Notes: generated from the sequence alone by a model not told the origin. A stretch of DNA of 64,000 nt from Phaeosaccion multiseriatum (GCA_965112735.1 OZ218951.1:2728001-2792000); one strand, 5' to 3'; positions 35,477 to 39,366 are shown, counted from the stretch's first letter. Program-made: numbers and translations.

Positions 35477-35720
35477 GGAGCAAGAAACATCGAGCAACAT
35501 GGTTCAGATGTCTCCACTCATACCCGTGGAGAGTCGGGAAGGGCCCGAAGGAAGGGCTGGGGAGGAGGTTGAGAAGAAGGCCAAGGTTGAGTTTGCTGTG
35601 AAACCACGGGGGCGGAGTGGGAGCAGTGGCAGCAGTTTCGTCGTTCCCTCGCAACAAGATGATGGTGATGATGATGCTGCAACAGAGCAGATGCAGGACA
35701 TTGAAAAAATTATGTTATAG
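27850..35720 (+). CDS. GPCR copy B: full-length class-C (7tm_3/GABA-B-like) receptor with a long ectodomain (Ig-like region, filamin-type repeat, Cys-rich stalk); 13 exons: 27850-28747, 28986-29188, 29609-29683, 29969-30124, 31023-31211, 31394-31513, 31988-32122, 32369-32584, 32978-33075, 33636-33816, 34261-34512, 34711-34872, 35187-35720; ~1072 aa
   Basis: TM1 is followed by NRTHWIVKLSQAMFCYMFLSG (class C K.SQP.F-like motif), then C.LRPW..HL.LTF.IG.LLVK|VHRAWKLF (K.WR..IF-like), ECL2 LEC, GYK..LL..GAYLSYQTWSI...AEAK...SLYN, and TM7 ending LFVPKL. Filamin-like motifs: TRDLYGN, GDGVYEV, GSPF. The exons total 3219 nt, in frame. Confidence 0.85.
30125..30912. repeat. (GAGT)n-derived microsatellite, ~790 bp, starting at the 5' splice site of GPCR copy B intron 4
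   Basis: CTG|gtgagtgagtgactgagtgactgagtgagt... The copy A counterpart (24997-~25172) is ~175 bp. Confidence 0.95.
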
Positions 35721-35750
35721 TGAACAGGGTGAGGAGACGAGGAGAAGGAC

Positions 35751-35806
<56 letters not shown>

Positions 35807-36474
35807 GGAGGAGGAGGAGGAGGAGGAGGAGGAGGAGGAGGAGGAGGAGGAGGAGGGGGGAACCAGGTATATCAAAAACACACGTTCAAACTTGCTTCAA
35901 GCTAGGCGTTTGTATAGCAATGCCATTCTGAGTAACGGCGTTAGTATTGAATGTACTAAGGAAAGAAAACTCAGCTTCATACTAAGCACCAAGCAAACGT
36001 GTGTGTGCGGCCGTGTGTGCGTGCGTGAGTACGTGTAATGAGTCGGACAACCGTCGACTCACTGCGCTTCCTTGCCGGAGTAAAAGTCGTCGTACTTACT
36101 CGGCCCTAGAGCGGCCTAGACCTATCTTGGAGTATGTGAAGAGGCCCGCGACAGAGGCCCGCAGCGCGGCGGCGGAGGGAAGGGATTTAAGGGGGGAAAA
36201 TATATGTTCTAAAGAGGGACCCCCCCCCCCCCCTCCCTTGTTCACAGATTCATTTTTTCTTTATCACCAACACTTGCAGGTGTTTTTTTGTATCGTTCGA
36301 TGTTTCCCTGTTCCTCGAGAGATTCCCTCTTATTAATCATCCCGCAGCACACTCTGAAACTGCCCACAGTAGAGATTCTACCGAGGGGGATCTTGGTGAA
36401 AGGAATGGGACAGGGGGAGGAAGAGGAGCAAATATCTATCCCCTTGTCTTTGGACTGGGCCGACAGAGGAGAGA

Positions 36475-38231
36475 ATGTGGTTGGGCAGTGCCGTCGTCTT
36501 GCTCTCATTGCTGCTCGGCAATGCGGCTGATGATGGTGCTCCGTGTATGGAGCACTTTGGGAAGGTGACAAAGGAGCAGAGGGCAAGTTATGCCGAGGCT
36601 ATGACCTTTCAGGCCCAAACGGGGCCAGGACCGAGGCAAGCGAAAAAACCAGGACAGTTGCATGAAGAGATCAGTGACAGGACATTCAACTTTCTCGTCG
36701 CGGGCGAGAGCGGGTTGGGCAAGACCACTTTCATCAACACTTTCTTCCAATTCTACAGACCGGATGGGGTACATCTGTACGACGGTGACGTGCTTGGCGC
36801 AACAAGACTGAGTGACTTTGTCCATCCGGAGACGCGCGCGCAATTGCAGTATTCTTTCAGTCACTACATGGAGAAGGTTGCAGGCGGGGGATTCAACATG
36901 AAATACACATTGCAAGATACCCCTGGCTACGGCGACGATTTGAACGTCAACAAGAGCATATCCGTGGTGATGGACCACATTACTGAGCAGCACTGCAGCT
37001 GGAGTAGGCACAGGAGTGACGCCTTCATCAGTGGAGGTGAGCCTGACCCTGGCCTGGACACTCGGTACCACGTGTGTCTGTACTTCATCAGCCCACATCG
37101 ATACAGGATGAACGATCTCTATTTCATTGAGCAACTTTCCACAGTGTGCAACGTGATTCCCATCATTGCCAAGGCTGACAGCATCACAGTGGCAGAGATG
37201 GAGCGGTTCAGGCCTCACATCATGGGAATGGACGGTGATACACCGGCTGGTGTCGATCGTCGACTACAAGGGCTTGGCGCGAACAAAACCACTGCCCAGC
37301 TTCTCGAGTACTTCACGGCAGAGCTCGCCACGTTGGAGCCACCGGCGAAGAGGAGACTGGAAGACATGTCTAAAAAGTACCCTGACTGTGGTACGAAGGG
37401 AGGAAAAGGGGTCAGCGAGGCTTCCAGAAGAGAGGATTGTCTCAACCTCATCGATGTCTTCCTCGTCGAGAAGTACGGATCCAAAGAATCGGAGGCTGCT
37501 CGCCGGCGGGACGTTGCTACACGGTTCATGCGTTTCAGCGACCCTCAAAGGAGGCAATTTTATGAAGATTTCGGCATTCGCTCCCCGCCAGATGGAGTCT
37601 TCTCAGTCATTTTAGGTAAGAGCCGACCCCTGAGGGTTTCTGTGGCTGGGGCGCACCCATATGCTGCAGAGGGGCGGGTACTCCTCCTTTCATTCTCTTG
37701 TCTGCCATCCTTTCGTCCCTTTCTCACCCCAGCTCCGCCATGGCCTTGCTCCCTTCCTCCCTTGCTCCTTTGGTCCTGTTGCTTCCATGATCAGGCCACG
37801 ACGACCGCAGCGACTTCTTCGAGCAGTGCTTCAACGTGAGCCCCAGGGCGTATCCTGCTCGAGTGTATCCGTGGGGCAGTGCCGAGACATTCAACCCCCA
37901 GCAGAGCGACGGTTTCAGCTTGCGCATGATGCTGTTTGAATACGGTTTCTATGACATTGAGAAGGCCATGAAGACACTGCACAAGAAGATTAAATCCTCG
38001 GGCCGAATTGACGACGCGAGGTGCAGCGCCATCCGTAAGACTCAAGGCACCGCCAACAAGAGAGGGTGGTACTCATCGTGGCGATTCTCTGGACTTGCTG
38101 CGGTGCTTTGTGTGAGCGCAGCCACACTCTACATGAAAAGGACAACTGTTTCCAGAGAGCAAGAGCAAGCAAGGAGGAGGATCGAATATGCTGCACAAAT
38201 GCGGCGGCGCTCAGAATCTATAAAAACCTAA
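36475..38231 (+). CDS. Septin-family GTPase with predicted N-terminal signal peptide and C-terminal hydrophobic anchor; exons 36475-37615, 37795-38231; ~525 aa
   Basis: G1 FNFLVAGESGLGKTTFINT, G3 DTPGYGD, DTRYHVCLYFISPHR, G4 NVIPIIAKAD and the septin-unique element RVYPWG...N...SD..LR..L. One GT-AG intron; 1578 nt in frame. Confidence 0.9.
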
Positions 38232-39366
38232 TGGTAGGTCTCCTATAAAGGCCCCCCTCCTAACGATTTATCTCTAGGTAAAGTAACAAGGAATTTGTGC
38301 TTTCCTTTGCCTCAGCACTTGGCGGGACCGTCACCCTAAACAGTTACAGAATGTTTTGGACCGGCACCGCTTTAACGGCTGCGGGAGTCCTGACCCCTAT
38401 TAAACCCCGGGGCAGACTCGACCGACGGCAACAGCAGATGCTGTACAACGGCCGCACGCAGCACTTTTGAGGTCACCTCTTGTCCGCCGAGCAGGAGTTT
38501 CAGGCTTGCGGTAAGGTCAGTAAGGCACATTCGGTGTTATGAAGAGACTATTCGGGTGCCATGCCCACCATGCCCTATTTACGATAGTAAAAGAAAGCCT
38601 GATTTACACTACTACTGGCAAGCGAGCCCCAAGATTTCAATTTCTCTGCAAACAGAGCCCCGCGCGACCGTGAAACGACCGAAAGAAGGACAGTGTGTGT
38701 CTGGTGCGACAGAGACTGCCCCCTTCCTTGCCACTCCTCCTCACGTCAATTTGATTTGTGGTAAAATTCATACTTAAGTAACCACCTTGCCTTGAAAAAG
38801 AGGAAAGTGAATATGTGAGGCACACCACCGCTTGGGCGGTCCACACCCCACAACCCACAAAGCCTCCCCTCCTGCCCACACACTCACAACCCCCCCGTCC
38901 AAACGCCACCCACTCACTGAAGAATGCCCATGGTAACCACGGAACAAACTCAGTCCCCCCCCCTCCCCTCCCCGGACACTACACACCCTCACAGAGCGCA
39001 AGCACGGTGTGGTTGCAGTGGCGGAGAAAGAAGAAAGCAAAGCGTCGTAACGAAGGATTTCGTCCAACAAAACGAATCCAGGGGGGGAGGAGTGCCCTTC
39101 CACCTTCCAACAGGCTACTACTACTGTAGCCAATAAATCCACCATCTCTCCCTTCCTCTTCTCCTATTCGCCTCCTCCCCCCCCCCCCCCCCCCCTAGTC
39201 CACCCTCGTCCACATTCGCCGTCGCCAGCCTATGATACGATGTGAGCCTGCCAGCCTGGCCTGCCAAACCGGTCTCCGAACCTCGTCTCTCTCTCTCTCT
39301 CTCTCTCTCTCCCCGGCCACACCCCCTCCCTCCTGTCCTACCCATACTATTTCACTATGACACTTA

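Follow-up and report, generated by a model that had tools for sequence, protein, structure and literature searches.

Septins are treated as a cytosolic cytoskeleton that contacts membranes through polybasic patches, amphipathic helices and, as recognized more recently, transmembrane (TM) domains. Among the described systems closest to the gene analyzed here are the algal septins of Groups 6A and 7, for example Ectocarpus Sept2; a TM segment was found in the C-terminal extension of 43% of Group 7 septins, in a study in which diatoms are unmentioned (Delic et al. 2024, PMC11238149). A second system is that of the 'TMD-septins', such as C. elegans UNC-61a, whose membrane link is functionally important (Perry et al., PMC10690161). 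N-terminal hydrophobic septin segments have so far been read as TM domains of cytosolic septins, in a survey that covered TM domains only and did not consider signal peptides (PMC10690161). The third is Chlamydomonas SEP1, a single algal septin, equipped with an arginine finger, whose place of action is an organelle membrane rather than the division site, indicating that algal septins can be organelle-associated, in this case from the cytosolic side (bioRxiv 10.64898/2026.03.28.715002).

The gene that we compare with these systems lies in a stretch of 64,000 nucleotides of Phaeosaccion multiseriatum DNA, analyzed as a whole and referred to here as the window. Its product shares with the Group 6A and 7 septins the arginine finger, the switch-I Thr and a hydrophobic segment at the same place in the C-terminal extension, and differs from them in an insertion of ~100 residues after G4; furthermore, the Ectocarpus Sept2, haptophyte and green-algal septins that we retrieved are, unlike the window protein, without an N-terminal leader. 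With UNC-61a it has in common an N-terminal hydrophobic segment that is absent from other isoforms or paralogs, yet the UNC-61a segment was read as a full TM helix of a cytosolic septin, whereas the hydrophobic cores in the clade of the window protein are mostly 10-15 residues long and have signal-peptide-type flanks and -3/-1 residues. SEP1, unlike the window protein as we read it, is cytosolic, binds through a C-terminal amphipathic helix and carries neither a leader nor a TM segment. A C-terminal anchor is already known from algal septins, while a signal-peptide-like leader on septins appears to be undescribed: in the full-text literature on septins with signal peptide, stramenopile, periplastid or diatom, we found no description of a signal-peptide-bearing or luminal septin. 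On the evidence presented below we lean, by a little, towards reading the N-terminus as an ER signal peptide and the C-terminal segment as a stop-transfer anchor, which would place the septin domain outside the host cytosol.

The septin gene and its product

The gene occupies positions 36475-38231 of the plus strand and consists of two exons, with a product of 525 aa. A sequence-only reading of the window had placed the start codon at 36475 and spliced the exons into a 525-aa septin with a hydrophobic N-terminus ending in a small-residue, cleavage-like site and a hydrophobic C-terminus followed by a short basic tail, and all of these elements were borne out. An in-frame TGA (36397-36399) precedes the start and no in-frame ATG lies between the two, the open reading frames and splice sites agree with the model, and the relatives align gap-free over the exon 1/exon 2 junction once the intron is spliced out. 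The start codon was judged by comparison with related genes; exon pieces were used as queries in the database searches and the spliced 525-aa sequence in local comparisons. Four public runs hold the DNA of the locus, all as genomic contigs from one sample, and these read through the intron, with neither splice joints nor read ends at the locus. The features of the locus are listed by position.

36405..36530, +, out-of-frame upstream ATG with a 41-codon ORF (uORF) that runs across the main start codon, its stop lying 17 nt short of the Met25 codon (36547)
36475..37615, +, exon 1, codons 1-380 and the first base of codon 381 (ORF; GT donor at 37616)
36475..36525, +, signal-peptide-like leader MWLGSAVVLLSLLLGNA, residues 1-17 (hydrophobicity and -3/-1 rule; kept as a property in the clade)
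36526..36684, +, short N-terminal extension ADDGAPCMEHF..., acidic at its start and containing Met25 and Met43
36703..36726, +, G1/P-loop GESGLGKT, residues 77-84 (unchanged throughout the clade alignment)
36802..36804, +, switch-I threonine T110, candidate catalytic Thr (invariant column; role from PMC11238149)
36916..36927, +, G3 DTPG, residues 148-151 (sequence and clade alignment)
37096..37101, +, H208-R209, arginine-finger position between motifs S2 and S3 (invariant in the clade; position as in PMC11238149)
37168..37179, +, G4 AKAD, residues 232-235 (sequence and clade alignment)
37225..37530, +, charged stretch of ~100 residues inserted past G4 and ahead of the septin unique element (Tribonema and P0001 have a short one or none)
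37616..37794, +, intron GTAAGA...ATCAG, 179 nt, phase 1, GT..AG (in-frame homology resumes past it)
37795..38231, +, exon 2, stop codon included
37860..37877, +, core of the septin unique element RVYPWG, residues 403-408 (sequence, Pfam and alignment)
38085..38135, +, C-terminal hydrophobic segment FSGLAAVLCVSAATLYM, residues 478-494, probably a TM helix (P0001 and P0003 have TM segments at the aligned position)
38136..38228, +, basic tail of 31 residues, with 10 K/R and 4 E (sequence)

The septin identity claimed by that reading was upheld by Pfam Septin (PF00735), which matched exon 1 with an E value of 4e-33 (115 bits against a cut-off of 26.2) and exon 2 with 1e-3 over profile positions 219-262 (18.9 bits, by itself below the 26.2-bit cut-off), together with the motifs G1, G3, G4 and RVYPWG. 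The septin unique element, ARVYPWGSAETFNP..SD..LR..L, aligns with that of the relatives. Both the switch-I Thr and the arginine finger, which are typical of non-opisthokont (Group 6-8 type) septins, are present. Since a comparably long insertion after G4 is contained within one open frame in a related gene (L005, see below), the insertion of the window protein is not a missed intron. With its P-loop, switch-I Thr, G3, G4, arginine finger and septin unique element all kept, the window septin still looks like an active, dimerizing GTPase, and judged by its motifs and its place in the trees the product is an algal non-opisthokont, Group-7-like septin. The trees place it among algal septins, with Ectocarpus Sept2 and the green-algal septins; in a maximum-likelihood tree of 48 septins it forms a clade with P0001 and the Tribonema proteins P0002 and P0003 at 99/99 support, which adjoins the Ectocarpus Sept2 clade yet is separate from it.

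The C-terminal segment FSGLAAVLCVSAATLYM consists of 17 uncharged residues and is only moderately hydrophobic, with a mean Kyte-Doolittle value of ~1.8 and a summed Hessa value of +4.1 for the 19-mer, which is marginal, while P0001 and Tribonema P0003 have clearly hydrophobic TM segments at this position. The residues before the segment are also basic, so that basic residues flank it on both sides. C-terminal TM segments were common among the algal septins of our retrieved set, in line with the earlier remark that such segments occur in some non-opisthokont septins and with their known occurrence in algae (PMC11238149).

Leaders in the window clade and in a second algal clade

Relatives of the window gene were sought by word-based and profile searches over 5.8 billion proteins. 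Only three close relatives were retrieved, namely P0001, from an intron-free and transcript-like Logan contig (48% identity), and P0002 and P0003 of Tribonema minus, and at the next match the score drops from 594 bits to 215. The fragments P0196, P0197 and P0198 came from an exhaustive profile search, and a metagenome DNA scan with exon 1 detected no relative. The two Tribonema genes are arranged head to head, ~1.1 kb apart as annotated (L002 4881-6001, JAFCMP010000401.1). A similar head-to-head septin pair, from an uncultured relative, is found on L004, a contig of JGI metagenome 3300081568 (122-2478), where a prokaryotic gene caller had cut it into exon-sized 'genes'. A further gene lies on L005, a Logan contig of SRR23617243, and at ~560-640 of this contig the P-loop itself is split by an intron (GESGLG/KTT). 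No second septin, as a head-to-head partner of the Tribonema kind, was detected in the 64,000-nt window. The clade was counted as seven genes: the window gene, P0001, Tribonema P0002 and P0003, L004 A and B, and L005.

A cleavable ER signal peptide has an N-terminal hydrophobic core of ~7-15 residues and small residues at -3 and -1. The N-terminus of the window protein, MWLGSAVVLLSLLLGNA-ADD, contains 18 uncharged residues, and the candidate cleavage site GNA/ADD places G at -3 and A at -1; its core WLGSAVVLLSLLL, followed by GNA/A, conforms to the n-, h- and c-region pattern by a hand-made heuristic only. The sequence-only reading had asked whether orthologs share this hydrophobic N-terminus, and most of them do: a hydrophobic leader stands at the first in-frame ATG in six of the seven clade genes, the window gene included. 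Under similar criteria, leaders were found in 5 of 189 and 8 of 302 other septins, and so the leader of the window clade is beyond chance (6/7 against ~3-7%).

Two of the leaders had been missed, as both public Tribonema gene models (P0002 and P0003) are cut short at the N-terminus. At the P0003 locus the frame is open upstream of the annotated start to an ATG at L002:5896, which yields the leader MVCAAVRRCAVAVTVFLVVGQRAAAAADDG and a corrected N-terminus reading MVCAAVRRCAVAVTVFLVVGQRAAAAADDGLSAEK-MQAAAAALWAT..., and the sequence AADDG is common to this extension and to the ...LLLGNAADDG of the window protein. In P0002, whose coding sequence runs from L002:4944, homology continues upstream of the annotated Met, where there is no ATG, and an unannotated first exon with GT/AG borders (L002:5512-5426, minus strand) encodes the leader MRVARLMAVVAGTAAAAAAGEADQ; MRVARLMAVVAGTAAAAAAGEADQLSADQ, encoded by this upstream exon, is homologous to the P0003 extension. 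The leader of L004 gene A is MLVPSWYRRLRLHLLLSCLVLLLPHSSLQG (N-terminus MLVPSWYRRLRLHLLLSCLVLLLPHSSLQGAVAAS) and that of gene B MIGLTFALTVGLCAGVAAQ (N-terminus MIGLTFALTVGLCAGVAAQMVPQ). The L005 leader is (MKGLGTWSFRA)MALVSGVVLLSS, its first exon reading (MKGLGTWSFRA)MALVSGVVLLSSQEMTD, and its MALVSGVVLLS is identical to MWLGSAVVLLS of the window protein at 8 of 11 positions. The four loci checked (L004 A, L004 B, L005 and the Tribonema P0003 locus) all have an in-frame stop ahead of the first ATG, and in the two L004 genes it stands just upstream of the start. The exception in the clade is P0001, whose N-terminus MDMSMFVSVSEILLGKS is in register with the window leader but is weak and broken by Glu.

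When leader alignments were shuffled, the observed score of the window leader was reached in only 19 of 2000 shuffles against L005 and in 36 of 2000 against Tribonema P0003. As only these two comparisons were significant, the argument from the leader rests on a conserved property and not on a conserved sequence. The extension behind the leader does hold a conserved motif in the window clade, LW..TP..Q..T(F/Y)L..MR..YR..M.

A second clade was traced from some of the few other septins with leaders. It comprises proteins of Cylindrotheca, Pseudo-nitzschia, Amphora, Seminavis ('Septin-8') and Pelagophyceae CCMP2097, along with many environmental sequences (P0273, P0277, P0325 and P0347-P0416), with Pfam Septin E values of 1e-37 to 1e-46. 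Its N-termini were taken as complete when they reached 40 residues or more ahead of G1; of 52 such sequences 44 carry a leader, and among other septins 10 of 134 do (Fisher p 9e-25). Like the window clade, it consists of true septins with leaders and a hydrophobic stretch after the septin unique element; unlike it, its members have AGLSGLGKTT as G1, Ser/Thr-rich inserts and a weaker C-terminal hydrophobic segment. The clade has 100% support and a long branch, and it is not sister to the window clade, so that the leader was either gained twice, or was ancestral in ochrophytes and lost in the brown-algal Sept2 line. The Seminavis 'Septin-8' and Cylindrotheca closterium models begin at the G domain and may be truncated.

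Signal peptide, membrane anchor or plastid targeting

The type of leader was assessed by simple features, namely core length, flanking charges and the -3/-1 residues. Core lengths in the window clade range from 10 to 18 residues (mostly 10-15), and each core is followed by a candidate cleavage site with small -3/-1 residues. Two or three positive charges precede the core in four of the six leaders, the 15-20 residues after it are acidic or neutral (net -1 to -4 in most), and the N-flank is more positive than the C-flank in five of the six. By the charge-difference rule, an N-flank more positive than the C-flank sends the C-terminal side into the lumen, as it does for signal peptides, and thus the positive N-sides and acidic or neutral C-sides of these leaders point to a C-terminal side oriented towards the lumen. 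Taken together, in their length and in the charges on either side the leaders come closer to signal peptides than to membrane anchors. The same orientation, with the N-flank more positive, was seen in 32 of the 44 leaders of the diatom/pelagophyte clade, and the reverse in six of its members.

Under the signal-peptide reading, the leader would target the ribosome to the ER, so that the septin domain would be moved out of the host cytosol, and cleavage would follow Ala17. With the C-terminal segment serving as a stop-transfer anchor, the protein would take a type I topology with the basic tail left in the cytosol, the side on which a basic tail is expected in a type I protein. Such a protein would most likely reside in the lumen of the ER or chloroplast-ER, or in that of a compartment later in the secretory pathway, and it is on the luminal face of these membranes that the septin would polymerize. 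In the head-to-head pairs (Tribonema and L004), one member with a TM segment and one without could supply an anchored subunit and a soluble partner subunit. The P0002-type paralogs of both pairs end in a conserved ..DDR(A/H)L(G/N)VW followed by the stop and have no TM segment; a search downstream of Tribonema P0002 gave no convincing TM exon, and the fact that the ending is kept in L004 suggests that this type of paralog is truly without one.

The main rival, which we consider unlikely, is a cytosolic septin anchored at both ends, by an uncleaved N-terminal anchor or in-plane helix and by a C-terminal tail anchor, with its GTPase domain polymerizing on the cytosolic face of an organelle or of the ER. 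Much of what speaks for it also weakens the case for a luminal septin. To our knowledge, the characterized septins are all cytosolic, and GTP is present in the cytosol; the clade keeps all residues for GTP binding and hydrolysis, and the ER lumen is not known to contain an established GTP pool or GTPase. The leader of P0001 is weak and the charges flanking its TM segment favor a cytosolic GTPase domain, and in the window protein basic residues flank the TM segment on both sides, which also counts against a luminal domain. In the diatom-type clade, two proteins (P0400 and P0406) show a polybasic RRKR or RKRRRR directly behind a long hydrophobic stretch at the N-terminus, as true anchors do, and so some members of that clade probably carry N-terminal anchors and keep their septin domain in the cytosol. 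A double anchor would, moreover, have precedents, in the documented TMD-septins with an N- or C-terminal TMD, UNC-61a among them as a functional case (PMC10690161), in Chlamydomonas SEP1, which acts on the cytosolic face of the chloroplast envelope, and in the many algal septins with C-terminal TM segments. Against it stand the leaders themselves, as most cores are only 10-15 residues long and have a positive N-side, an acidic or neutral C-side and small -3/-1 residues, an arrangement that indicates orientation towards the lumen, and likewise the P0002-type paralogs, which carry the leader but no C-terminal TM segment.

The signal-peptide reading is further weakened by the out-of-frame ATG at 36405, which could move initiation to Met25. 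This ATG has a good context and its uORF sits in the frame of ORF 36288..36530. It would be relevant only with a 5' UTR of more than 70 nt, in which case leader-bearing and leaderless (Met25) forms could both be made.

A septin of the periplastid compartment is improbable. Here the leader would be the signal-peptide half of a bipartite sequence and the extension a cryptic, transit-peptide-like part, bringing the septin beside the plastid envelope, to a place equivalent to the site of SEP1; the association of the Chlamydomonas septin with the chloroplast envelope agrees with this, as do the plausibility of GTPases in that compartment, the non-aromatic +1 residue, as in periplastid proteins, and the S-, T-, A- and Q-rich extensions of L004 A and B. 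Transit-peptide-like regions, however, require a net positive charge, judging from diatom targeting work. In the window protein no net positive stretch follows the leader: the 20 residues after the core have a net charge of -2 (-1 to -4 in four relatives), and acidic residues follow the leader in the window gene (ADD..), in both Tribonema genes and in L005. The periplastid space, which the sequence-only reading had listed among the possible destinations, is therefore disfavored by the acidic stretch. In addition, the conserved extension motif suits a mature protein better than a presequence, and in the Amphora septin only ~25 residues separate the leader from the G domain. Stromal targeting of the ASAFAP type, with F, W, Y or L at +1, was rejected, as the earlier reading had also concluded: the +1 residue of the window protein is Ala, and no candidate +1 residue in the clade is aromatic.

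Very improbable by now is an artefact of the gene model. Under this account translation would begin at Met25, at Met43 or on a further exon upstream, and the hydrophobic stretch would be pyrimidine-rich 5' sequence that is not translated. In its favor, the public runs that contain the locus are all genomic DNA, the stretch is CT-rich like intron ends with AG dinucleotides upstream of it and inside it, the upstream ATG at 36405 is out of frame and the public Tribonema models start downstream. The account is at odds with the leaders at the first in-frame ATG of six related genes (four with upstream stops), the 8/11 match of L005, the separate GT/AG-bordered leader exon of Tribonema P0002 with its homology to the in-frame extension of P0003, and the distance of only ~750 bp from the neighboring upstream gene.

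Wider meaning and surroundings of the locus

To return to the reading we favor, in which the leader is a signal peptide, the recurrence of the same tag across two algal septin groups suggests that septins with a leader may work inside the internal membrane system. In ochrophyte algae the endomembrane lumen also houses the four-membrane plastid. A wider proposal, doubtful as it stands, is that ochrophytes (xanthophyte relatives, diatoms, pelagophytes and Phaeosaccion multiseriatum) moved septin filaments into this lumen, where TM-anchored and soluble subunits would scaffold or constrict membranes from the luminal side. Luminal septins of this kind could act, for instance, at the periplastid membrane or the chloroplast-ER during plastid division, a step for which no machinery is known. 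If true, the proposal would give the first septin cytoskeleton outside the cytosol and would mean that guanine nucleotides are supplied to that lumen. As the leader is conserved in two septin clades of ecologically dominant algae, it would mark either a septin system across the membrane or a large N-terminally anchored class, and either reading changes the annotation of algal septins, with the leader dropped from both public Tribonema models and probably from several diatom models. The leader-bearing septins also offer a concrete candidate for the machinery by which the outer membranes of complex plastids are shaped or divided.

Around the gene, a scan for bacterial-type promoters and terminators upstream of the septin gene gave no match, such models being uninformative for a eukaryote. 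The spacer at 35504-36035 is crowded with simple repeats, first trinucleotide runs whose ORFs would spell poly-Ser, poly-Met or poly-Arg and then a GT-rich run, and a tract of 14 C lies at ~36219-36232, between the upstream gene and the septin gene. Right after the septin stop, positions 38224-38440 hold a multi-copy repeat over which contig depth rises 5- to 20-fold, and many contigs end in this repeat or continue from it into unrelated sequence.
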